Shown here piece by piece: positions 289 through 58,465 of a stretch of DNA of 64,000 nt (within the stretch, counting starts at the first letter, position 1; every line of letters starts with the position of its first letter). A program made the translations under genes and the position numbers. The notes under the pieces are model-generated. The model saw nothing but the letters and a program-made list of their open reading frames with translations. It did no database searches and was not told the DNA's origin. The stretch spans positions 186,001 to 250,000 of the forward strand of contig OW569392.1 in assembly GCA_937625935.1 (NCBI GenBank). Reading direction: 5' to 3'. The stretch is from Tetramitus jugosus. Lineage: Eukaryota; Protista; Heterolobosea.

Positions 289-3200
289 CTAGCACTTTTG
301 TTGCTGAGTCGTATCAGCATAAGTGCACAATGAGTAAACCTTGAAACCAGTGTTGATGGTCAAGAAGGAGCTATCACCACTATCCATCTCGACACCACCA
401 TCCATAGGTACTTCGCCAAATGTATTCACAGGAGATTTCGACAAAACGTCATTAATGTTCCACAGCTTAACAGTACGATCATATGATCCACTGGCAACAA
501 CGTTTGGTGCATAAGGAACAAGACACTTGACAGCATTCGAGTGACCATAGAGTGTTGACATGCATGACCATGAACCTCCACGAATTGAAGTAGATCTGTA
601 ATCCCATAACTTGATAGTTTGATCCTTTGATCCACTCACAAGGACGTTATTGGAATAACATAAACTTAAGACTCCACTTTGATGTGCCTTTACACTCTTC
701 GAAAGGCCAGTATTTCCAGCAGCGGATTGACTGATAGGTGCTCTCATATCATATGCCTTAATAACACCGTCGTAGGTACCGCAGTACAATAAGCCTTGCT
801 CTGCGTGATAATACAGAGACAAAACAAATGATGTGTTCTCATACTTCAACAAGCATTTGCCCTTCTCTACGTCCCACATGCGCACAGAGCGATCACCACT
901 ACCACTGAACAAGAATTGATCATTGGTGGAGCAGAGAACATTGATCCAATCAGTGTGACCGTTCAATGTCTTGACACATGTTTGCTTGTTCAGATCCCAG
1001 ATACGAATCTTGTGGTTGGTTGGTCCGTCTTTGGAACCACTGACCAAGTTTCTTCCGTGAGTGCACAAGGCACCAACCTTGCCCTCACATCCGTGCAAAA
1101 TAGCCTTGCAATCACCAGTTTCAAAGTCCCAGAGACGAATACTTGTATCGCCGGAACCACTGCAAATATATCCCTCTTGGGAGTGGAGAGCACTGACAAA
1201 GCGAGTGTGTCCCTTGAGTGACAGAGTACACACATCCTCCTCCAAATAAATATTGGTTCCAGTAGTGGAGTTTTGAATTGCAGAGTCAGTGTCCCAAACT
1301 TTGATACTTCCAACACCACCGCCAGCCAAGAGGAACAATCGACCATTGCTGCAGCTGCTACCGACCTCTACAGACGGCTTCAAAGGAGAAACAATGGCAT
1401 TGGAAGACGCAGCAGCAGCAACAGAAGGAGCAGAGTTGCTACCGTTGTTGCCAGTATTGCTGGCTGACAATTTGTTCATTGTTGGTGGAGTGTTGATGGT
1501 GATATTGGGAATAGTAGTGGAGGAGCCCATGGGTCCACCACCACTGCTACCACCAGCATTAGGATTCATCATCATGCCCATCATTGGTGAATGATGTTGG
1601 TTGTTGAGCATCTTATTGTTGTTCCTAGGTGAAATTTGATTTTCATGAGTGATACCAACAATGGATGAATAACCTCCGGAAGAAGGCTTCATCATGCTCG
1701 ACATGGACGCTCCTACAGAGTGGAATCCAGTACCTTCAACAGATGTTGGACTTCCGGCTCTGCTGCTGTGATTGCTGCGTGGTGGAGAAATTGTCTTATC
1801 ACAATTGTTCATGATGGAACCAATGTGCAACTCGTGAGTACCGACAAGAGAAGGACCCAACATCATTCCACCACCTCCCAATCCATTCATACTCTGGTTT
1901 GAAAATTGTTGTTGATGGTGAGAGAGATGGTGATGAGAGAGGTGATGATTATGATGGTGATGAGAGAGAGGTAGAGAGTGTGAAATGAGGTGTTGCTGAT
2001 GTTGTTGCTGTTGCTGCTGCTGTTGCAACGAGTGGTGATGGTGATGAGGAGGTGGAATCCCATGATAATTCTTCAATTGATGCAATCGAGAACCGCCTCT
2101 TTCACCACTATTATTCATACTATTATTATTATTGTTGTTGTTATTATTTACACCGCTATTGTTACCACTCGTACCCATATTATTGTTATTGTTATTGCCT
2201 CCAGGGACCATTGACATGTGATCAGTGCCCATAAAAGAATCCATTGCAATCATGCCCTTTGTAACAAGTGGTGATGCATTCGATGGAGTAATCAATGGAG
2301 TCAACGGACTGTTGAGTGACTCCTTACCAAACAGACTGACAAACGTGCTGGCTGAAGTAGCACCTGCATTGGCAGTCGTGGCTCTATCCAACTCAATTTT
2401 CAACGAGTTAATCTGTTGACTCAATTGCTGTTGTTGTTGCAAGAGTTGCACAATGAAAACATCCTTTTCTTCGCATGATTTCTTCAATGATCCACAGAGA
2501 TTGTTGAGTTGAGAGATTTGATCTTGAGCTTGGTTCATGCATACTTGAAAAATGCCCGAAAAGGAACAATCGGATTGTAAATGAGTAAATAATTGTTCGC
2601 GTGGACCCTTCCAGTGACAACCATAGTTTCCTAGAGTGCACGAAACAATTTGTTTGCCGCATGATGTCTGCATGTGTTGATCCATCAACTCAAACTCAAC
2701 TAAATGACCACAACTATTTGGACATCGCATGATATGTGTTGAATTGGCCTATTTTGGATTTGTTAACTTGTTTGTTAGCTTCAACACATGAAACGAGGGA
2801 AAAAAAATGCAAATTTCTCGATCAACACAAAAAAAATTCCAAGAATGGCAGTAGCACAGTAGGGAGTAGTCGACGACTTGAAAAATGCGAACCACAGTCA
2901 CGATAAGTACCTAATGAATTCTTCTTCTTTGTCTAAAAATCAAAAATGTAAACGGACAGTGGTCGGGGAGAGAAGCTCTAGTAGTTGTTTGATGTGCTTC
3001 TTTGCTAACCAAAAATTTGTTGATGCGTTCAAAAACGAAAAAAGCTTTTCTTAGAAACGATTCTCTTTTTCCTTTGTTGATGTTGTTGTTGTGTTGGAGC
3101 TAATAAATTAAGTTGTTTTTTGGTTGATGAGTTGCCGATTATTCTTACTATTATTGTTGTTATTGTTGTGTGAGAGCTAGTGTGCAATTTAGTTTGCAAG

Positions 3201-3823
3201 TTGGAATGGAAGGTGTGATTCTTCAATGGACGGACTCACACAACACAGTGAGGTGTTTTTTTCGTGTGAACGGACTTCACTCCCCGACACTAAATTTTCA
3301 CAGGCATACATCAAACAGGAGAAAAACAGACCCCTCCTTTGCACAAAGAAGGTCTTTGATACACTTGAAGAAAATCGTGGATTCGCAAAATTTCCCTACT
3401 GCCATTTTGGAGTTTACAAAAAAAGAGTTGTTGTGATGCAAGAAAAAATGATGGTTGTGAAGGACTTACGATTTGTTGAACAACTGGGTTGTGAGTGAAT
3501 TGCTCATCCAGAGCTTTCATGTTTCTCACTGGTTGATCACACTTTGGACAAGCTTGAGAAACATTCTTCAAATGCTCAATGAGGTCTTCCCAGTTAAACA
3601 ATGAGTGACAATCTTTGCATTCCCTATTGTTCTTGAGTGTTGATTGACTCAAAGAACAAACGATGATTTCTCTCAACGGCTTTGATTGGAGTTCTGGACT
3701 TAATTTCGACAACCAAGCTGGTGAAATAGTTGGTGATGTTTCGTTCTGTTGATTGCAACCCTTGGTGGAGGGTGGTGCAGGGCTGGCAACAGGTGCTGGT
3801 GTATTAATGAAGATCGTTTCCAT
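289..3823 (-). CDS. TRAF7-like protein: degenerate RING + TRAF-type zinc finger + coiled coil + low-complexity linker + WD40 propeller; exons 3823-3470 and 2748-289
   Basis: Exon 1 has C-S-L-S...ECKDCH..F...CPKC. Donor GTAAGT at 3469, branch CTAAC near 2776, acceptor TAG ending at 2749; the phase-0 join reads NPVVQQI|ANSTHIMRCPNSCG...H...C...C...GC...HLQSDC. C-terminal GH...SGS.D..I++WD repeats. Confidence 0.85.
2749..3469 (-). other. 721-nt spliceosomal intron containing nested inverted repeats (predicted long hairpin)
   Basis: GT..AG ends and an in-frame join of RING to TRAF finger. Complementary pairs: 2838-2854/3396-3411, 2886-2895/3377-3387, 2924-2932/3343-3351, 2958-2975/3275-3291, 3026-3043/3257-3272, 3164-3174/3235-3245. 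Confidence 0.75.
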
Positions 3824-4703
3824 GGTTGATGATTGATTCGTTGATTTGGTTTCTTTCAGTTGAGTAATGGGAATTGCTGCTTGTATTTACAATGTATGGA
3901 TGGATGGCCAATAAATAGTGAATTAACCTGAAACAATCAATGAATGACGCGTACGAGAGTCCTATAATGAGCTATTCTTTGAATGTGTCGATTGGCAGTG
4001 ACTTGAAATACTCTTTAGCGCTCTTCCTTGGCTTGTGAGTTGGTGGTCATAAGTAATACCCGTAACTTGGTAAACGAAAATAGAACGGAGGGATTTCTTC
4101 ACCGATCCTTTGTTGTCCAAAGATGATTGTAAAATTTCCCCACGGGACGTTCACATACAAAAAATAACCTTTTTCTTTTAGAACTGAAACAGAAACGTTG
4201 TAAACAATTTCTGGTCAACTGAAAAACCTCCTTCAACGAAGTAGAGTGGTTCGCCATGAAAAAAGGTGCCCAACATGGAGTCTTAATCTCTCTTGTGCTA
4301 AGCATACTATATGCTTTGCTCCAATAACTTTCAGGTTACGACGAGAAGTCCGTTGAACAGCACTGGCATGAACCAGTTCTGCCAACCTTGTTTGGACGCT
4401 CACCTCCCATGAGGCCTGCACTTTCTGCATTCAGTGTCGAGAGAATTTAGCCCACAGCTGTAGTGTTACGCTCCTTAAGCGCATCGTATGTTTACTGTGA
4501 TAGGAGTCTAACTCCATGTCAAGCATATTATCAAGCCAATTCCAATCGATTTGAACAAAACGTCTTGACGACGGCGAAATAAATATGGTTTTTGTATTGC
4601 CGTGATCAATTCTTCCCGCCACAAAAAAGCAAAAACTCTTCGCTGATCAAAATCACCAAGACCAGCAACCATATCTAACTATCCATCACACAAAACACAC
4701 AAA

Positions 4704-6656
4704 ATGAAGAAAAGGAGAGCAGTAAGAAGAAACACGAGTTCCAACAAGGAGCAAAAACTTGATGGTAGTGACTCCTCAGCTTCCACAACACCAGTCGAAA
4801 AACACACACTATTTCTCACACTTCCCATCTCTTATCAAGTTCATCACTATGATGCAGATGAGGTCGATGTGAGATGGCTAAAGGAAATTAACTCAAAAAT
4901 TGCTCTAGGTGACAAATTAGCAGAGATTTTGCATTTGAAATCATCTGATGGTATTGCAATGCCAATTGTTCATGCATTGTCACATATTGATGGTACTCTG
5001 ACTGCTCAAGCAAGCAAATCTGAGATTCAATCTCAGTTTTCAAATGAATTTCAATGGAATCAACACATGGTCAACTACTCGAGTGACGATTCATCTATTG
5101 TTCCTCCACCACTCAAAGAATGGAGAATTACAGTGGGAGAAGCAATCGGATGTGCACACGATCAAACGTACATGGACATTTGTTTGAGTTGTGGAAAATC
5201 AATTGCCAATCTCACACCCGATCAGAAAAAGGTCTATGGTGCAAAGGTTTCGGTCATGCATGGAGACAACAAGTTCCAAATGAAGCAGACGGATGCTCGG
5301 CAGATTGATATTGAGCATCAGAAGAAATTGTTGAGTGTTCATAAAAAGTTGGTGTTGGTTCTCGATATTGATCATACTTTACTGCAAGCCATGTCGTATG
5401 ATCCTGTTATTAAGGCCTATGATTTTTTGAAACAGTGCGGAGATGAGCTGACATCGTTTGCAGAGATTGGAGGAATGAGACTTGGAAAGAATTGGCGTCA
5501 TATTCTCAAACTTCGTCCCCATTTGAGACAATTTTTGGAAGACATGTCAAAATTGTGTGAATTGCATATTTTCACGCATGGTGATCGATTGTATGCGGAT
5601 TCTGTGGCCGAGGTGCTCGATCCAACGAAAAAATTGTTTGGAGATCGAGTCATTTCGCGTAATGAGATGGAAGAGAAGAGCAAGAAGACATTGAATCATA
5701 TTTTCCCGGCTGGTGATCAAGCTGTAATGATTGTGGATGATAATCTTGGTGTTTGGAGAGGTCATGAACCAAATGTGTTTCACATTGTGCCCTATATACC
5801 GTTTGAGCTTCATTTCGGTATAACGAATCGAGAGGTAAATAATCAGGCTGGAGGAAAACTGTCTCAGAGCGAGCCTTCAAAAATGCTTGACCTTAACTTA
5901 TTCCCAAAGAAAATGAAAGAGATTGATCGTAAGGAGAGCGATAATCAGTTAGAAGTTCTGTCATCGATGATCAAACAGATTCACGAGAAGTTTTTTGAGA
6001 GATATGATGCAGGTGATCGTTCTGTTCACGTGAAAGACCTCATGATACAAGCCAAGTCAAACATACTCAAGGATGTACATTTGCTGTTTAGTGGTATTAT
6101 CCCATTGGACACGGATCCGAATACGAATCGTCTCTGGAGACTGGCACAAAGAATGGGAGCAGCTTGTTATACCAAGTGGCGTGACGAAGTACCCATCTCG
6201 CATTTAGTGATCTCCCAAAGAGATCCCAATAACATAACAGATAAGGTCAAAAGAGCAGAGCAGACTCCAGGTCTGTTCATTGTACATACTTCTTGGATTG
6301 AGGAATGCTATCGGTATAATATGCGGTTGAACGAAGTGGACTATCTGATGATTACGAGTGGTGTTTATCTACCGATTACAAGGCACTACCACGTCGTCGG
6401 TGAGGCTGCTTCTTCATTCCAGGAAGCTGCTCAACAACTGATGATTGAGATGCGCAGAGCTCACTTTAAGCTTCACGAAGTCGTCGAAGATGACTTTTCT
6501 GATCTGGATGAATTGTCTGATGTCTCCTCTGCAGAAGATGAAGCATCTGACAGTGCTGAAACTCCTCTCACACCTGCTGCAGAAGAAGGCAATTCAGACG
6601 AAGAGGAAGACTCTGGTGACGAATTCCTCTCCCTGCTCGAACAATCGGGACAATAA
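4704..6656 (+). CDS. FCP1: RNA polymerase II CTD phosphatase FCP1/CTDP1
   Basis: LVLDIDHTL (DxDxT), KLRPHLRQFL, FGDRVISR and VMIVDD motifs; C-terminal BRCT domain (LLFSGIIP...SHLVI...VHTSWIEEC); acidic tail. Confidence 0.93.
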   Translation: MKKRRAVRRNTSSNKEQKLDGSDSSASTTPVEKHTLFLTLPISYQVHHYDADEVDVRWLKEINSKIALGDKLAEILHLKSSDGIAMPIVHALSHIDGTLTAQASKSEIQSQFSNEFQWNQHMVNYSSDDSSIVPPPLKEWRITVGEAIGCAHDQTYMDICLSCGKSIANLTPDQKKVYGAKVSVMHGDNKFQMKQTDARQIDIEHQKKLLSVHKKLVLVLDIDHTLLQAMSYDPVIKAYDFLKQCGDELTSFAEIGGMRLGKNWRHILKLRPHLRQFLEDMSKLCELHIFTHGDRLYADSVAEVLDPTKKLFGDRVISRNEMEEKSKKTLNHIFPAGDQAVMIVDDNLGVWRGHEPNVFHIVPYIPFELHFGITNREVNNQAGGKLSQSEPSKMLDLNLFPKKMKEIDRKESDNQLEVLSSMIKQIHEKFFERYDAGDRSVHVKDLMIQAKSNILKDVHLLFSGIIPLDTDPNTNRLWRLAQRMGAACYTKWRDEVPISHLVISQRDPNNITDKVKRAEQTPGLFIVHTSWIEECYRYNMRLNEVDYLMITSGVYLPITRHYHVVGEAASSFQEAAQQLMIEMRRAHFKLHEVVEDDFSDLDELSDVSSAEDEASDSAETPLTPAAEEGNSDEEEDSGDEFLSLLEQSGQ

Positions 6657-9178: not shown

Positions 9179-11023
9179 ATGCAACTACGAAAGAAATCAA
9201 CCTCAGCAGCAACTGAAGCTTCAACAACAACAACAACAACAACCACAACAGGAGATGAACTAGACGATAACATTGATGATATCGATTTCGAGTATCAACC
9301 ATCAGACAATGAAAATGACGAAAATGATGATGAAAACGACATAGAAGTCGAAGAAGAAGAAACAGAAGGACAAGTCACTACCAAATTATCATCATCAACA
9401 CCTAAAAAACCAACAACAACTACTCGTAAAAAGAAAACAACAACAACAAAACGAAAAACAACAAAAACGGCATCGAAAAAGAAAACTCCGAAAAGAAAAC
9501 AATCAACAAAGAAAAAGAATGGTGAAGATAGTGATGATCAAGATGATGATTACGAGTACAATGAATACAGTGATGAAGACAACATCAAGGCTGTAAAATC
9601 AACTTATTCGACTAAAAAACGATCCAATGTGTCAAGTGATGAAAATAGTGATGATAATGACGGTGATGATGATGAAGATGGTGAAGGAAATGATGGTGAA
9701 AGTGCCATGTTTGATGACTTGTATTTACCATCAGATGATGACAATGATGATCAAAATCAAAAATCAATCAAACAAACAGGAGTCAGTTTAGTAGACAACA
9801 AGTCAAATGGTGATGAACAAAAGAATGGTGAAACAATGATGGTCAATGACGAGAGTGAATCAACAACAACGGCAACAAGAAGGAGAAATAAGGGAAAGGG
9901 CAAAGCAGTGGATTACTCTGAGGAACCCATTGATTTGGCATCAGTGTTTGGTGAAGGTGCAGTTGACTATGATGATAAAACGGATGAAAAAAAGAGTAGT
10001 AAAAGTACTGAAAATGGTGGTGAAAATGCAGAAGAAGAAGATGATGGAGAATATAGAGAGAATGATGATGAAGAAGAGGAGGATAGTGATGCTGATGAAG
10101 ATGAAGAGGATGATGAGTTTGATGATGAATTCGAACCAGAAGAGGAAGAAGAAGAGGAAGAATTGATGAATCCAAATCAATTGGAACAAGTAGAGAAGGA
10201 CAGAGCAGCAATAAGAGATTTGGAACCAACGATTATACAAGAAGAGGTTTACATGTTGTACAATGATATGACAAAGGATGTGAAGGATGTGATTCGGGAC
10301 CATGGTAATTCTTCATCGAGTTCCGTGGGTGGATCTTTCTCATCTTCCTCTGGTTCTTCCTCTTCTTCATCATCCATGTCGGCAGCCTCTTCATCCTCAT
10401 CAAGCAGTAGTGGTTCACAAGAAAAACCTGCATCGAGTTCTGTCGATAGAGAAGAAAATCGTGATCTAAAGCGGATGTACGATAGCGTCGACGATTTCTT
10501 TAATCACATGAAGAGTAACGCACCACCAAGCAAGAAACCAAGAATGGAGACAAAACCAGTGACAACTCCAACTGTACAATTAACTCAGCCACAAGTCAGA
10601 TCAACCTCTGCCCCTGTCTATGTTGCTGGATCATCCAGTAGTAACACAAACAGTATTGATGACTTCTTTAACGAGATGCATCAATCAAGTCTGACGGTGT
10701 CTCAAAAGAGTGTTCTCACAGGATCGTCAATGGCACAAGAAGAAGCACCAAAGGTGGAAGTGGAGCAACGTCAGGACAGATTAAGTGCCATGATTGATCG
10801 GTTGCAGAAGAAACAGGTATCAACGATTCAAAAGAGTAAGATGGATTGGCAAAAGTATAAAACTGAACAAGGACTTGAAGAAGAGCTGCAACATGCCACA
10901 AAGGATGGTTATTTGGAGAAGCAAGCGTTCTTAACGCGAACAGAGCTTCGAGAATGGGAGAAGGATAGAGATTTGCGTAATCAAGAACGTGAGCGTCAAC
11001 GATGGGCTCAACAAAACAAATAA
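9179..11023 (+). CDS. CFDP1: BCNT-domain protein (CFDP1/Swc5, SWR1 complex subunit)
   Basis: C-terminal BCNT motif STIQKSKMDWQKYK..GLEEEL...KDGYLEKQAFLTR; long acidic/basic low-complexity N-terminus. Start at ATG 9179 is inferred. Confidence 0.85.
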   Translation: MQLRKKSTSAATEASTTTTTTTTTGDELDDNIDDIDFEYQPSDNENDENDDENDIEVEEEETEGQVTTKLSSSTPKKPTTTTRKKKTTTTKRKTTKTASKKKTPKRKQSTKKKNGEDSDDQDDDYEYNEYSDEDNIKAVKSTYSTKKRSNVSSDENSDDNDGDDDEDGEGNDGESAMFDDLYLPSDDDNDDQNQKSIKQTGVSLVDNKSNGDEQKNGETMMVNDESESTTTATRRRNKGKGKAVDYSEEPIDLASVFGEGAVDYDDKTDEKKSSKSTENGGENAEEEDDGEYRENDDEEEEDSDADEDEEDDEFDDEFEPEEEEEEEELMNPNQLEQVEKDRAAIRDLEPTIIQEEVYMLYNDMTKDVKDVIRDHGNSSSSSVGGSFSSSSGSSSSSSSMSAASSSSSSSSGSQEKPASSSVDREENRDLKRMYDSVDDFFNHMKSNAPPSKKPRMETKPVTTPTVQLTQPQVRSTSAPVYVAGSSSSNTNSIDDFFNEMHQSSLTVSQKSVLTGSSMAQEEAPKVEVEQRQDRLSAMIDRLQKKQVSTIQKSKMDWQKYKTEQGLEEELQHATKDGYLEKQAFLTRTELREWEKDRDLRNQERERQRWAQQNK

Positions 11024-17588: not shown

Positions 17589-18030
17589 ACACTCAACACT
17601 CAATATCTTCGTTCACCCTCACAGTAAAAATAGTTCAATAGATTGATATGGGCATGTCAATCTGTCCGGTCTATTGAACAATTCGTACAGTCTTCATCCG
17701 CTGTCCACCACAGAGAGTCCTTCCAAACGGACCAAAAAAAGCTCAAAGCGGACAATAGATACGATCAACGATAGCAGAATTGTATCAATAAAAACATACA
17801 GCTAAAAAATAGCGATCACCAACAAACCTTCACCTTCTACTACCCCACACCGACAACTACTCCCAATACCAATTGTTTCTCCTTTCCCTCACCAATCATC
17901 TTCTTCTCCTCCTGCTACCACCAACAACAACAACAACAACAAAAACAAAAAGCTAACACAACAAAAAATAACAACAAAATCTACTTGAGCTAGCTCTGAC
18001 ACCATTTAATAAAAAAAAAACCGATAAAAA

Positions 18031-19470
18031 ATGATGATGAATACGAATATGAATTCAGTACCCATGGCTGCGAACAATCCATCATCATCCTTGATGTTTA
18101 CTAACCCCATGCAAGCCAAACCACAACAACAACAACAACAACCACCACAATTACAACAACCATTACAACAACATTCACCAGTTCATGCACAACAACAACA
18201 ACAAGATCCAACAAATGCACTATCCGCTCAACGACTCCAACAACAAATGAACACTTTTAAATTTGGTACAACAGACAACAGTTCAAGCATTCCATTGAGT
18301 GATCCAAACTATTGGCAAATGAGAGACTTTGAAATGTTGGAAACGTTGGGCACGGGAACGTTTGGAAGAGTGAGACTTGTGAGGCACAAGCAAACACAAC
18401 AGTACTTTGCGATAAAAATTATGAAAAAAACAGATATTATACGATTGAAACAAGTGGAGCACATTATAAGTGAAAAGGGTGTTCTTTCGGTGATTAATCA
18501 TCCGTTTGTAGTCAATTTGTATAAGACGTTCCAGGATGAACATTACTTGTACATGGTGATGGAATATGTTTGTGGTGGAGAATTGTTTTCTCATTTGAGA
18601 AAAGTGGGAAAGTTCCCCAATGATGTAAGTTACAATTGATTTTTTTTTGTTGTTGTTGTTTTTGTAATTGTTTTTGTAATTGTTGTTGTTTATGTGATGG
18701 TCATTGTGAATGCATAAATTGTTTGATTGAATGTGTTTGATTTCATTAACACTGGTGATGAACAAAATGAATAATGACTTTCATTTGATTTGTTGATTTG
18801 TTTCATTATTTTGATGATTGATTCAATGGTAAAGGTTGCCAAATTTTATGCTGCTGAAATTATACTTGTGATTGAATATTTGCACAGTAAGCATATTGTG
18901 TACAGAGATTTGAAGCCTGAGAATATTTTATTGGACACGAAGGGTCATGTGAAGATTACGGACTTTGGATTTGCAAAGAGAGTCATGGATCGTACTTGGA
19001 CGCTGTGTGGCACACCAGAGTATTTGGCACCAGAAATTATTCACTCCAAGGGTCACGGCAAAGCAGTGGACTGGTGGGCCTTGGGTATTCTGATATATGA
19101 GATGCTTGTTGGTTATCCACCATTCTTTGATGAGTCTCCATTCAAGATTTATGAGAAGATTCTGGCTGGTAGGATCGAATTTCCTCGATTCATGGATCCA
19201 GCTGCCAAAGATCTCATCAAGAAGCTGTTAACACAGGACAAGATGAAGAGAATTGGTAACTTAAAGAATGGTGCGGCAGATGTCAAGCAACACAAGTGGT
19301 TCAGAGGAGTGGATTGGAACGATTTGTACAATAAGCTCATTCCTTCGCCAATCCCCGTCAAGGTTTCATCCGCAGGAGATTCTCGATACTATGAAAAGTA
19401 TCCAGAGAGTGTGGAAACGCAGAGTGGAACATTACCGGCCGATGTTCAAGCACTGTTCGAGTCATGGTAA
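18031..19470 (+). CDS. PKAC: cAMP-dependent protein kinase catalytic subunit; exons 18031-18624 and 18835-19470
   Basis: LGTGTFGRV, IIRLKQVEH, YRDLKPEN, DFGFAK..TWTLCGTPEYLAPE, KAVDWWALG. GTAAGT..AAG intron 18625-18834 joins KFPND|VAKFY. Confidence 0.95.
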
Positions 19471-44344: not shown

Positions 44345-44880
44345 CAGCTATCTGTTGTATCTGACACGGAAGAGTCGTTGGACGTTATGTCGAATGTCCT
44401 TTGTGATATCAGGTCTTGAATGATAATCGTAAAACCATCGTCGCTCTGTTCATACATCTTCTTTAACAGGGAGTTGACTCAAGGAATAACTGCATGATGG
44501 GAAGATCTTTTTGATCACTATTGATAATTCCATGTGTATCTCCCAGAACAGCATTCAATTTGGTGTATGATTCGATCTGCATCTCTTTTAGAGGTGTTGG
44601 TGCGAGAGAGAGAAGAGGTTGAAAATATGGGTTTTCTTGCCCAGCTCTATCAATCATTTGTTCCACTGTTTCACAAGTCTCTCTTCTCGAAACGCCCATG
44701 TAAGACAGTACAATCCCCTCCGTCTTCGACATGTAATTTAAGTAGTCAGCAAGGACGGACATTGGTAGAATCGATAGTGGGTTTTTATTCATAGTTGAAA
44801 CCATCATCCGCCACTACAGACTTCACTTCAAAGTAGGAGTACATCTCCTTGATCGATTCCATTCATTGCTCGTCAACTGG
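44345..44880 (-). pseudogene. Decayed unknown ORF (frameshifted fragments around ORF 44463-44807)
   Basis: Protein-like stretches in shifted frames: MESIKEMYSYFEVKSVV..., the 114-aa ORF, then KKMYEQSDDGFTIIIQDL.... Confidence 0.35.
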
Positions 44881-45153
44881 TCCTCAAACAAGTAGGCGTT
44901 GGAAAAGTTCTGAAACTATTCACTGATGTCAGTGGATTTCTCTCGGAATGACAAGTGTAGGTGGTTGACCACCAACTCCTGCTTCTGTTCCGCCACTACA
45001 CATGACAAACAAACAAATTCTTATTCAAAAGACGAGAAAATGAGGACGGAAGAGGACCACAATAAGAATTTGGGTTTGTTCTCAATCTGCGCTTGACAAA
45101 GACAAGATCAGAACTTGACTCAAGTCCAGCGGGAAAATAACAACAAAGACAAC

Positions 45154-46104
45154 ATGCGAACCAACAACGTTGTTGTCACAAAGCACAAGCAAAGAACAGA
45201 TGAAAGTGATGAATGGATAAGGACCAGTGAAATTTGTTCCCCACTATGCAGGGACACATGGTCAAAAATTGTCGAGTTTTGTGACACTCGAGAATGGTTT
45301 CAATTGAGTTACACTTGCAAGGGAATCAACAAGTTCAAATTCAATCAATGTCTCATGATTGACAAGGTGAGAACTTTGAAAAGAACTTTGAATGATAAAG
45401 AAATTGACCATTGGTTTCAATTGGGAAAAGGAATGTTGTTTAATGTTAACTTGAACGGTTGTCCTGCAGTAGTGGACGAACATTTCCAATATCTGGAAGG
45501 CATACACACTCTCAACATGGTTGATTGCGAGAATATCACAGATGATGCATTCTCTCATTTGATTGGTATTCACACGCTCAACATGAGAAACTGTCAGCAT
45601 ATCACAGACAATGCATTTACTCACTTGACTGGTATTCACACTCTAAGTATGAGTTTTTGTAAGAAGATTACAGATAGTGCATTCATTCATTTAGCTGGTA
45701 TTCACACTCTTGACATGAGTTGTTGCAAGAAAATCTCAGATAATGCATTTCCTCATCTTGCTGGTATTCATACACTCCTTATGACTCGTTGTGTGCAAAT
45801 CACAGACAGTGCTCTCGTTCATTTGACTGGTATTCACACACTAAATATGAGTGGTTGTACTCAAATCACAGATAAGGCCTTTGTTTGTTTGACAGGTATT
45901 CAAACACTTGAGATGAACGGATGTAACCAAGATTCTCTGACAGAGAAGGCATTGCTTCAGCTGGAGGGTGTTAGAAAACTCAGTTGGTTTGGCAGGCGTA
46001 ATGAATTCACGAGAGAGGTTATCGACTATACCAAGCCCAGTTCGATTCGAGTTGTGCAACCAATAACATACTACGCAGGTCAAAGGTTGAACAGATCCCA
46101 GTAA
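45154..46104 (+). CDS. F-box-like + cysteine-containing leucine-rich repeat protein
   Basis: F-box-like PLCRDTWSKIVEFCD...LSYTCK, followed by seven GIHTLxMxxCxxITDxAFxHLx repeats. Confidence 0.85.
   Translation: MRTNNVVVTKHKQRTDESDEWIRTSEICSPLCRDTWSKIVEFCDTREWFQLSYTCKGINKFKFNQCLMIDKVRTLKRTLNDKEIDHWFQLGKGMLFNVNLNGCPAVVDEHFQYLEGIHTLNMVDCENITDDAFSHLIGIHTLNMRNCQHITDNAFTHLTGIHTLSMSFCKKITDSAFIHLAGIHTLDMSCCKKISDNAFPHLAGIHTLLMTRCVQITDSALVHLTGIHTLNMSGCTQITDKAFVCLTGIQTLEMNGCNQDSLTEKALLQLEGVRKLSWFGRRNEFTREVIDYTKPSSIRVVQPITYYAGQRLNRSQ
45499..45960 (+). repeat. Coding tandem repeat, 66-bp period (22-aa LRR), 7 copies
   Basis: GGTATTCA recurs at 45565, 45631, 45697, 45763, 45829 and 45895; first copy GGCATACAC at 45499. 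Confidence 0.9.
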
Positions 46105-55700: not shown

Positions 55701-57504
55701 TTGTACAAGTGATTACGCTGAGTTGCATCATTGGGTGCATAGTACAACGCATTCATGAACATGAGTGCATGAGTCACGTACTCGAGTCCCAACGGCTCCG
55801 TCACATCTGCCCTCAAGAATGACTTGACGAGCGAACTGAAGCGCGATACTTCCCTCTTCATGAGCTTGTAGTGATTCATTGCTTCCAATACGACACAATA
55901 AATCTCTTCACTCGCATAGCACAACACTGACAACAGATACAACAGATGAATACGGATACCAATCTGTTTCTTCCAATAGAGACAAGTTGCCTTGAGTGCA
56001 CTACTCATCTTGAAATTCAAATTGTTGCCACCGAGCATCGTGTTACCAACAATGACTCTTGAACCACCACCACCCATACTAGTATTCTCATCAGGATGAT
56101 GATCCATACTGTTGGTGCTGCTTGTACTGCTTGTGCTGCTCGAATTTTCATTGTTACTGCTACCACCACCACCACTAAAGATACTGGACACAATATTCTT
56201 CTTATTGTGATGATGATTTCTTCGCTTCGACAGCTTTTGGCTGTGTTTCAATGACTCATTCCTCTTCATTGTTTCATAATGATTCGTGCACTGAATCAAT
56301 TCATCAAAGTCCAAACTGATGCACAACGTGTTGATCACCTCTGGATTATGAATCACTGCTTCTAATCCCTCACCCGTATCCAACAAGCTCGATATACAGA
56401 GAACGACTTGTTGTTGAATATCGACATCCATCATGAGTGCAGTCATTTGAACAGATTGATTCTTGGAGTGAACAAACCGTATCACATGAATCAACAAGCT
56501 ACTCAACAGCCCAAGTCCTCCAATCTGAATAAACGACAGCACATAGAACACATCACACGTGCGCAAACAATCCGTTAATGATCTCAATCGATCCAAGTAC
56601 TTTTTCTTTCGTCGATTATCATCTTCAGAGTTACTTGTTTGATAGTGGTGCAACACAATGTTCAACACATCGATAAAATAGGGCACACTGTTGAGTTGAT
56701 GCCTCGATTTCTTGGATTTTCTTGTTTTGCCCGGTGTGGTCAACACTGCCGGTGTAAACAAAATGTCTTGTGCATCCACATTGCTATTATTGTTATTCGA
56801 CTCAACAACCATGGTGGACGTTGAAGATTCATCATCTTGGTTCTGATGATGTTCATCTATTGATTCATTCATTGCACTTGTGGTTGTACAAGTGACTGGA
56901 ACTGCACTTGTTGAAGATTCAGATGTTTCAGATGATTCAACAATTGTTGTTGTTGATGATGATGATGATGATGATGATGGTAGAGGTAGAGATGATGATT
57001 GTTGATCTCTTGATTTGGGACTAATGGGAGGTGTCAGCAGTGACGATGATGAAGATGATGCATTGTTGTTAGCAATTGCAGTAGTCGTAGGTGACTTGTT
57101 TGTACTGTTATTATTATTATTATTCATTGAATTGGACATGGACACTACAAGCATCGATGCACTCATTGTACTATTATTATTATTATTACTACTATTCGTA
57201 CTTGTATTAGTAGTAGTCGTATTAGTAGTAGTCGCATTATTATTATTGTTGTTGGGCAATACACCATGGACTTGTGACGTTCTCATTTGCAACAATAAAA
57301 TCTTTTGTTTGCGAGAGTATTTGGCCAACTCGAGTGATACATTGTTCTGAGAGACACCTCTGGATTGCAACAATCGATCAAATAGTGAATCCAATTCAGA
57401 GTCCGTCAATGTATCATAGGAACTCTGTATCATGTTTGCATTTCGATTATGGAAATTAAATTGACCACCACCACCAGAGCTTCTAGGTGATGGTGATTGA
57501 ACAT

Positions 57505-57536
<32 letters not shown>

Positions 57537-58465
57537 TTACTGTTGTTGAGAGTAGCATTGGGAGTAGTGACTGCAATAGAGTGTCTAGTTCTAGGAGATG
57601 GTGCAGATGAAGGTAACAATAGTATAGATGATGAATCTGTTGTTAATGTTGTAGTGTTGGTGTTGGTGTTGTTGGTGGTGAGTGGTAGTACTGCATCTGA
57701 ATTGGTTGTTGTTGTTGTTGATGTTAGGTTGAGACTGAGTGCACGTGCAGAACTGGATCGTGGAGTCATTAACAAGTCTGATGATATGACTGATGGACTT
57801 AACTTTGGTGTTCTAGGTGTACTTGTACTAGTAGTAGTACTAGTAGTAGTCGTTGGTGGAGTAGTAGTTGTTGTTGTTGTGATGGTTGGTTGTTGTTGCT
57901 GTTCTTCTTCTTCTTCATTCGTGTTGGAATTTAATTGTGATAATTGAAGTGGTGGAATGGGTGATGATGAGAGTTGTGAGCATGTTGATGTTGAGTCGGA
58001 TGGTTGTTGTTCTTCTTGTTGTGACAACAAGGGAACTTTTAATAATGATTCATAATCTTCATCATTCTCAGTACTATTATCAGCATTATCATTTGTTTCA
58101 TTCACAACAACAGTATCAACAGTACTATTATTATTATTATTCACAGTAGTAGTATCATCATTGTGATGATCATCAACAGGAGTAATGTTATCACTGTTGG
58201 ATAATACATCGGTTGAATCTTCCTTTGTGATGAGCGGTGATGACTCCTTACAGTCATCATCTTTATCATCACTATCATTGTTATCATTGTTATCATTATC
58301 AGAAGGGGTAGTGCCGGTAGATACAAAATTGGTTGTTGTTGAATTTTCATCATCATTGTTGTGGTTCACATTGGAATTAGGTTCGACATTTTCGACATTA
58401 TCAACTACATGGTTCATGACGTCATGAACAGTTGTTGTTAATGGTTGTTGTTGGTTGTCGTCCAT
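52718..58465 (-). CDS. Formin (GBD/FH3, FH1 polyproline, FH2)
   Basis: SFIQIGGLGLL and VLEAMNHYK..RFSSLV (GBD/FH3); FH1 PPPP-M(I/M)GGG repeats at about 54700-54880; FH2 INWDEIERQY, SFLDANQNRQI, IPRLKQK, VYGFKLLFLTKLED. Confidence 0.93.

Follow-up and report, generated by a model that had tools for sequence, protein, structure and literature searches.

Introduction

Alternative first exons and intronic promoters give rise to N-terminally truncated protein isoforms. RNA structures that lie within introns have been described in several groups of organisms. Long introns of yeast (RPS17B/RP51B) contain zipper stems (Rogic et al. 2008, PMC2536676), which have also been probed in vivo and are defined by a total linker of 42-85 nt (PMC12350175). 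In teleost fish, (AC)m-(GT)n bridged introns carry complementary tracts at their ends, which enforce correct splice-site pairing (Lin et al. 2016, PMC4691745). Exons can be looped out, or splice sites masked, by long-range RNA structures, as reported for Drosophila (Raker et al. 2009, PMC2724269) and, in the form of conserved complementary regions, for human (PMC8052449). Here, we analyse the first intron of a TRAF7-like gene from the heterolobosean soil amoeba Tetramitus jugosus. The gene is located on the minus strand of a stretch of 64,000 nt (contig OW569392.1 of assembly GCA_937625935.1, positions 186,001 to 250,000), which is referred to as the window and whose numbering is used throughout. 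The intron is 721 nt long, is flanked by two coding exons, and contains nested complementary segments that could fold into a rod.

The overall picture that we favour, with reasonable though not high confidence, is that of a composite first intron with two donors, an internal exon, a presumed internal promoter, and a possible role for the helices. Long introns with such elements resemble known systems in some respects and differ from them in others; this comparison is taken up at the end.

Results and Discussion

Two donors are joined to one acceptor

Exon 1 (3823..3470, minus strand) begins with the ATG at 3823, encodes a RING-like domain and ends, according to its translation, with ...NPVVQQI in phase 0. 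Exon 2 (2748..289, minus strand) encodes a TRAF-type zinc finger, a coiled coil, an N/Q/H-rich linker, and a WD40 propeller. The RNA data consist of assembled contigs from two soil metatranscriptomes (X1 and X2), which were placed at low depth on positions 2300-3900. In both X1 and X2, a joint from 2747 to 3469 skips exactly the positions 2749-3469, with GT..AG on the minus strand (CT..AC on the plus strand). The 721-nt intron (3469..2749) is therefore real; it extends from a distal donor GTAAGT (3469) to an acceptor TAG (2749). This agrees with the earlier note on this DNA, which had interpreted the interval as a spliced intron between a RING-like and a TRAF/WD40 exon.

A second joint, from 2747 to 2910, was seen in X2, and X1 contains loose ends that match it. 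Here 162 nt are skipped (2910..2749, minus strand): a proximal donor AG|GTACTT, with its GT at 2910-2909, is connected to the same acceptor. Thus, two 5' splice sites use one common acceptor at 2749. A branch-point motif CTAAC can be read from the sequence at 2778..2774 (minus strand); its branch A at 2775 is 26 nt away from the acceptor. Two JGI contigs, whose source strains share 97-98% protein identity, also lack the 162 nt. The first of these (L002) consists of the 5' untranslated region, exon 1, the unspliced segment 3469..2911 and exon 2, such that only 162 nt were removed. The second (L031) begins at ~3175 and shows the identical excision. The JGI contigs may share samples with X1 and X2, and we therefore count at least two independent observations rather than four.

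The depth of the RNA contigs varies along the intron. It is zero over 2786-2893 in both X1 and X2, equals or exceeds the depth of the coding exons over 2894-3217, and drops to 0-3.9 upstream of ~3217-3240. In X2, the contig depth is 6.8 for the proximal joint, 2.0 for the distal joint, and 3.4 for unspliced RNA across the distal donor. The model of a simple intron, as put forward in the earlier note, is consequently correct with respect to the 721-nt excision, which was seen, but not with respect to the interior, where the RNA also defines an internal exon (~3245..2911) next to a 162-nt intron. The earlier note had named a subdivision of this kind as an outcome that would speak against its reading, and this outcome is partly borne out. 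The corrected gene model comprises two donors, an internal non-coding exon, and a probable internal promoter, whether or not the helices have a role.

The same contigs could also result from a removal in two steps, as in nested or recursive-type splicing. The 162-nt 3' part would then be excised first, followed by the remaining 559 nt with ...CATTAG serving as acceptor. The proximal site does place an acceptor-like AG directly against the donor (CATTAG|GTACTT), L002 has precisely the composition that such an intermediate should show (exon 1, 559 nt, exon 2), and nested spliceosomal introns exist in fungi (PMC9024468). However, an intermediate should carry the internal exon and the segment 3272-3433 equally, whereas the internal exon is several-fold deeper. 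Furthermore, L031 starts within the intron, no CTAAC-type branch motif is found upstream of 2911, and AG|GT is the ordinary donor consensus. The end product would be indistinguishable from that of a direct excision of 721 nt. Taken together, two-step removal appears improbable.

The distal donor generates a conserved full-length protein

All homology searches were run per exon, that is, with exon 1 and exon 2 individually. In the mRNA contigs of three related species (L009, L010, and L043, with identities of 57%, 73%, and 65%, respectively), the RING-like region continues in frame into the TRAF finger, with the junction exactly where predicted. The junction reads ...VQSI|VN(T/K)TIMRCPN in L009 and L010, and ...VQQI|VNTTIMRCPN in L043. 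A genomic ortholog (L003-L008, one organism, 70% identity) is syntenic with respect to a NIF phosphatase gene; its contig L003 contains an intron of 560 nt after ...VQKI, which is the equal phase-0 position. The consensus across the junction is ...VQ(Q/S/K)I|(A/V)N(S/T/K)T..IMRCPN, and exon 1 is conserved right up to the donor in L003, L009, L010, and L043. Because the junction is conserved and the intron position is equal, the full-length protein is the conserved product. In other words, the distal donor joins the RING-like exon to the TRAF/WD40 exon in frame, and four related species have conserved the resulting protein form.

These findings also bear on the idea that the locus consists of two separate genes, a small RING-like gene and a TRAF/WD40 gene, with the 721-nt junction being a rare read-through chimera. 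Unspliced and spliced RNA at the distal donor are indeed about equal in depth (3.4 versus 2 and 3.9 versus 4), the internal exon is leader-like, and reading through from exon 1 gives an ORF (open reading frame) of 170 aa. In contrast, the mRNAs of three related species connect both parts in frame at the exact position, the amino acids immediately preceding Met 2730 are kept, the changes there being synonymous, and L003 shows no conservation of the read-through tail. Moreover, RING-TRAF-WD40 is the domain order of TRAF7. We consider two separate genes to be very improbable. An exact look-up found no database record identical to the 170-aa read-through ORF or to the 813-aa ORF that starts at Met 2730.

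The intron of L003 (4501-5060) displays two further features. Its donor GUAAGUAUA is perfectly complementary to UAUACUUAC, which is located ~65 nt upstream of the acceptor and resembles the 5' end of U1 snRNA (small nuclear RNA). It also holds a TATATAA box (~4958) and, at 5013, an ATG that shares the frame of exon 2; these hint that an internal promoter exists in that species as well.

The internal exon precedes a possible RING-less reading frame

The internal exon, which may serve as an alternative leader, is read from the minus strand. Its 3' end at 2911 is exact, whereas its 5' end at ~3175-3245 is approximate and follows from the RNA depth and the start of L031. On the sense strand, the 335 nt from 3245 to 2911 contain zero ATG triplets compared to 4.3 expected (P ~0.01), and the exon ends in a TAG (2913..2911) that is in the frame of exon 2. 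Transcripts that contain this exon therefore cannot read into exon 2, and their first ATG is that of Met 2730, which is the first ATG of exon 2 and starts an ORF of 813 aa. The step in RNA depth, the start of L031, and the lack of ATG triplets are together suggestive of an intronic promoter. We thus find it rather probable that much of the RNA with the internal exon starts at an intronic promoter and is translated from Met 2730 into an 813-aa protein that lacks the RING-like domain. The two products would then be an E3-ligase-type protein with and without this domain.

The mRNA contig L043 from a related species (positions 1-451) has a CA-rich 5' leader of 451 nt for the same gene, in which no ATG was noticed on reading. 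The composition of this leader resembles that of the internal exon.

Five nested helices are predicted in the intron

The earlier note had described six nested complementary arms. We recovered arms with a repeat finder and with a minimum free energy (MFE) fold, and assigned to each the mean pair probability from the partition function; all arms refer to the minus strand. Arm 1 pairs 3396..3411 (5' strand) with 2838..2854 in 11 + 5 bp with one bulge (probability 0.94-0.97), and its 3' strand is situated within the 162-nt short intron. Arm 2 pairs 3376..3387 with 2886..2896 in 6 + 5 bp (0.96), and its 3' strand is found 14-24 nt downstream of the proximal donor. The GC-rich arm 4 pairs 3274..3292 with 2957..2976 (1.0) and arm 5 pairs 3257..3272 with 3026..3043 (0.91); both of their 3' strands are located within the internal exon. 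Arm 6 is a hairpin of 11 perfect bp (3235-3245 with 3164-3174; 0.95), which lies near the approximate 5' boundary of this exon. The probabilities of these five arms stay the same if 100 or 300 nt of exon flank are added.

The exception is arm 3. Its strands (2924..2932 with 3343-3351) are complementary, but their pairing has a probability of 0.001 and is not predicted to form, being outcompeted by a local hairpin and by the pairing of 3367-3374 with 2920-2927 (0.37). Five of the six arms were thus confirmed at the positions given in the earlier note, with probabilities of 0.91-1.0, and one was not. The distances of 58 and 89 nt outside the outer stem were given correctly in the earlier note. 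A further perfect complement of 10 bp (2986..2995 with 3308-3317, minus strand) crosses arm 4 and has no share in the nested ensemble (probability 0.0); were it to form, it would have to do so as a pseudoknot or in an alternative conformer. Outer helices that include the distal donor (3469-3428 with 2809-2830) were considered and rejected: they fold in the isolated intron, and their probability is 0.0-0.03 in the presence of exon flanks.

The nested arrangement described in the earlier note was put directly to the test, against controls, by means of a chain score, for which the best nested chain is built from perfect Watson-Crick stems no shorter than 9 nt. The intron scores 50 nt with five stems. 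Dinucleotide shuffles yield 13.6 +/- 7.1, and neither these (0/300) nor block shuffles (0/200) reach 50. The score is the top of the 64-kb window, followed by values of 44, 40, and 39, and the maximum in 200 kb from 20 other contigs is 31. Pairs that span more than 200 nt number 108, compared to 42 +/- 16 in dinucleotide shuffles (0/200 reach 108); this value was attained by none of 120 block shuffles and by one of 100 genomic controls of 721 nt. The nested helices are thus real and statistically unusual within a real long intron.

A different claim of the earlier note, namely that folding brings the intron down to a normal effective size, did not withstand the comparison. The structural distance separating the branch point from the 5' splice site, taken after Rogic et al. 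2008, is 20-35 here, 28 in shuffled sequences, and 29 in genomic controls, so that shuffled and genomic controls give an equal distance. The argument of an effective length hence fails to separate this 721-nt intron from random sequence.

Origin of the helices

The outer arms resemble terminal inverted repeats of 16-17 nt, of which 16/17 nt match, the arms are colinear, and a 9-nt direct repeat ACAAAAAAA is located 1-4 nt outside each outer arm (2827-2835 and 3416-3424). These features would fit a decayed inverted duplication or a foldback-type mobile element that was inserted into a once-short intron; the earlier note had proposed a decayed foldback element. However, a search of the 26-Mb genome with the 721 nt finds the self-match only, and the outer-arm sequence is without a further genomic match at up to one mismatch; with up to two mismatches, the pattern has scattered single genomic matches (29 versus 10 in the control, a roughly two- to threefold excess). 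A gapped alignment of the intron with its own reverse complement is not significant (score 52 versus 39.6 +/- 8.8; 54/500 shuffles reach it), and a comparison of the two sides shows up to five-fold differences in the spacers that separate the arms. Furthermore, the flanking repeat ACAAAAAAA is a low-information A-run, and the L003 intron is equally long with an unrelated sequence. The pattern is one of islands of perfect pairing amid spacers that cannot be aligned, and not that of a recognisable old inverted repeat. As the intron is single-copy and its arms are not alignable, the proposal finds little support, and an origin from such an element seems to us an improbable explanation.

The suggestion that the intron hosts a non-coding RNA fared no better. 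An Rfam scan (E up to 10) gave nothing but noise, the best scores being 13-18 bits compared to thresholds of 43-95, with E from 0.66 up. The RNA that stems from this interval is explained by the spliced internal exon.

Other parts of the window also contain complementary segments. The segments 18001-18721, 44641-45361, and 57061-58141 have the chain scores 44, 40, and 39, compared to a genome mean of ~9-11. Example stems in 18001-18721 are 18125/18690, 18147/18671, 18191/18660 (14 bp), and 18316/18597. The top self-reverse-complement alignment of the 64-kb window (score 94) is that of 9841-10800; it lies inside an ORF with a BCNT domain, and its stems include 10100/10395, 10138/10366 (13 bp), and 10153/10351.

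A possible role of the helices in donor choice

Use of the distal donor (3469) removes all 721 nt and yields the form with the RING-like domain, whereas use of the proximal donor (2910) removes only 162 nt and retains the non-coding exon. The proposal of the earlier note that the structure regulates the joining of the RING exon to the TRAF/WD40 exon is reasonable and can now be put more precisely, as a possible influence on the choice between these two donors. The 5' strands of the helices (3235-3411) either coincide with the approximate 5' boundary of the internal exon (3175-3245) or lie upstream of it. The 3' strands of arms 4, 5, and 6 are inside this exon, and those of arms 1 and 2 are just downstream of its donor. 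Most or all of the 5' strands would thus be present solely in transcripts from the upstream promoter, and only long pre-mRNAs could form the rod. In these, the rod might loop out the internal exon together with its donor, move the distal donor toward the branch point, and in this way favour the excision of 721 nt. Judged by predicted pairing and placement, it is plausible that the nested helices matter for donor choice, but we advance this tentatively. Less likely still is the stricter version, according to which the rod is a promoter-coupled splice-site selector, with transcripts from the upstream promoter folding the leader exon and its donor into the 570-nt rod and skipping them, and transcripts from the intronic promoter, which lack the 5' strands, using the proximal donor and making the RING-less protein.

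If this were true, promoter choice and donor choice would be linked through RNA structure alone in a discoban protist. The full form would be a RING-containing ligase, and the RING-less TRAF/WD40 protein could be regulatory or dominant-negative. If the helices do steer donor choice, the locus would represent a compact case of isoform control by long-range RNA structure beyond animals, fungi, and plants.

Strain variation was assessed with L002, L031, L032, and X23, whose introns diverge by 0.4-3.4%. In the runs X22 and X23, coverage of the whole interval is uninterrupted, as would be expected of DNA from two strains or haplotypes. They represent two variants of the locus (2300-3900), which are ~97% alike and show many small indels in the intron. 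In arm 1, no substitution is found, and three are immediately adjacent. In other strains, a CCA insertion adds a CACGAU/AUCGUG helix to arm 2. Within arm 4, an A-to-G change converts an A-U into a G-U pair, and two further changes at the end of this arm are uncompensated. In L002 and L031, an insertion of 4 nt shifts the register of arm 6, which then comprises 11 bp with one bulge. The variation is too small for an argument in either direction.

Several observations count against a role of the helices, and some of them against the wider picture of the locus. All RNA support comes from environmental assembled contigs of low depth, and contigs cannot show transcript starts or phase isoforms. The proximal junction is abundant, and L002 carries exon 1 and this junction on one contig; the proximal donor may therefore also serve transcripts from the upstream promoter, despite the helices. 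The predicted difference in accessibility is small, as the proximal donor is unpaired with 0.48 in the long and with 0.61 in the short precursor. The folding energy is marginal, with an MFE z-score of -1.75 on 200 dinucleotide shuffles, 12 of which fold as well. On 20 dinucleotide shuffles the z-score is -2.07 (0/20 fold as well), and it is -2.4 with shuffling inside 40-nt blocks (2/120). For the antisense strand, the z-score is +0.6, and 13 of 20 shuffles fold as well. Folding energy thus sets the intron apart less clearly than its nested topology, which is unusual compared to shuffles. No double compensatory change occurs among L002, L031, L032, and X23, and some indels and substitutions hit the arms.

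The ortholog does not strengthen the case either. A pairwise alignment detected no alignable similarity between the 721-nt intron and the 560-nt intron of L003. The latter folds with long-range pairs (z -2.0; P ~0.02-0.04 in the nested-chain test), but this pairing, unlike that of the 721-nt intron, is fully reproduced by block shuffles that keep the regional composition. It is explained by composition, because the 5' part of the L003 intron is GU-rich and the 3' part is CA/CU-rich.

The most serious alternative leaves the splice anatomy unchanged and holds that the helices are a functionless by-product, the extreme tail of chance complementarity in a low-complexity, strand-asymmetric intron, and that the choice of the donor is set solely by splice-site strength, intron-size preference, and promoter use. 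The modest z-scores, a structural distance no better than that of controls, the absence of compensatory changes among the strains, the behaviour of L003, and the abundant use of the proximal donor regardless of the helices all speak for it. Moreover, the window contains other high chain scores, and the helices were chosen post hoc as its most striking feature. Chance, on the other hand, does not easily account for a score that is the maximum over 264 kb (at most 31 in the 200 kb from other contigs, 0/200 block shuffles) or for five arms with a probability of at least 0.91. Nor does chance predict the placement of the arms, which flank the internal exon's boundary and surround the proximal donor. 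We rate the by-product explanation as a substantial possibility, albeit below even.

Domain assignment and neighbouring genes

According to a genome search, the TRAF7-like gene is present as a single copy in the assembly of 26.35 Mb. A Pfam search with exon 1 gave only a weak match to the Rtf2-type RING (21 bits, under the cut-off), and the RING-like domain is degenerate. A protein search with exon 1 retrieved one near-identical contig and nothing else. For exon 2, the Pfam matches to the WD40 propeller are strong. The TRAF-type zinc finger was read at the start of exon 2, and the ortholog record contains PF02176 (zf-TRAF).

A gene for a NIF/FCP1-type phosphatase (window 4704-6656; L003:936-2822) is positioned head-to-head beside the TRAF7-like gene in both species, so that synteny is conserved. 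The other flank of the ortholog contains SRP14 and FKBP genes. For the glycyl-tRNA synthetase encoded in the window, the best relatives with a name come from Willaertia, Naegleria, and Acrasis (57-60% identity), which marks the organism as a heterolobosean amoeba.

Comparison with known systems

The intron shares with the zipper-stem introns of yeast that it is a long intron amid mostly short ones, and that its sequence is poorly conserved across species, which makes covariation hard to obtain. The candidate for a zipper stem is arm 1, with 16 bp and a probability of 0.94-0.97, separated from the donor by 58 nt and from the branch A by 63 nt. The resulting linker of 58 + 63 = 121 nt is outside the range of 42-85 nt, which is a further point against a function of this kind; the outer helices that could shorten it have the probability of 0.0-0.03 given above when exon flanks are present. 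Instead of one stem, five stacked helices span ~570 nt here and enclose an alternative exon with its donor. In addition, the structural distance to the branch point is not below expectation, and the helices are predictions.

With the bridged introns of fish, the locus would share the principle that complementary segments near the two intron ends bring the right splice sites together. Such repeats are partly present in the ortholog, as the L003 intron contains GT-rich repeats near its 5' end and CA/CT-rich repeats in the 3' half. Complementary dinucleotide repeats at opposite intron ends are absent from 2749-3469. The arms in the window are unique sequences, and the host is a discoban amoeba, which is far from vertebrates.

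The exon-looping structures of Drosophila and human are similar in that an alternative exon with its donor is enclosed by paired regions, and that skipping is predicted. These cases rest on conservation or compensatory substitutions in combination with mutational tests, whereas the helices of the window rest on predicted pairing.

As in stwintrons (PMC9024468) and in recursive splicing, a donor is located inside a larger intron, and an RNA that lacks just the inner part, as an intermediate would, was observed. Unlike in stwintrons, no splice signal of an outer intron is interrupted, and excision in one step explains the final junction equally well.

Finally, the locus resembles genes with alternative first exons: an ATG-free leader within the first intron is spliced to a common second exon, and the next ATG omits the first domain. 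It deviates from a plain alternative first exon in so far as one contig (L002) links the leader to exon 1. The alternative exon and its donor are the new information for this gene.

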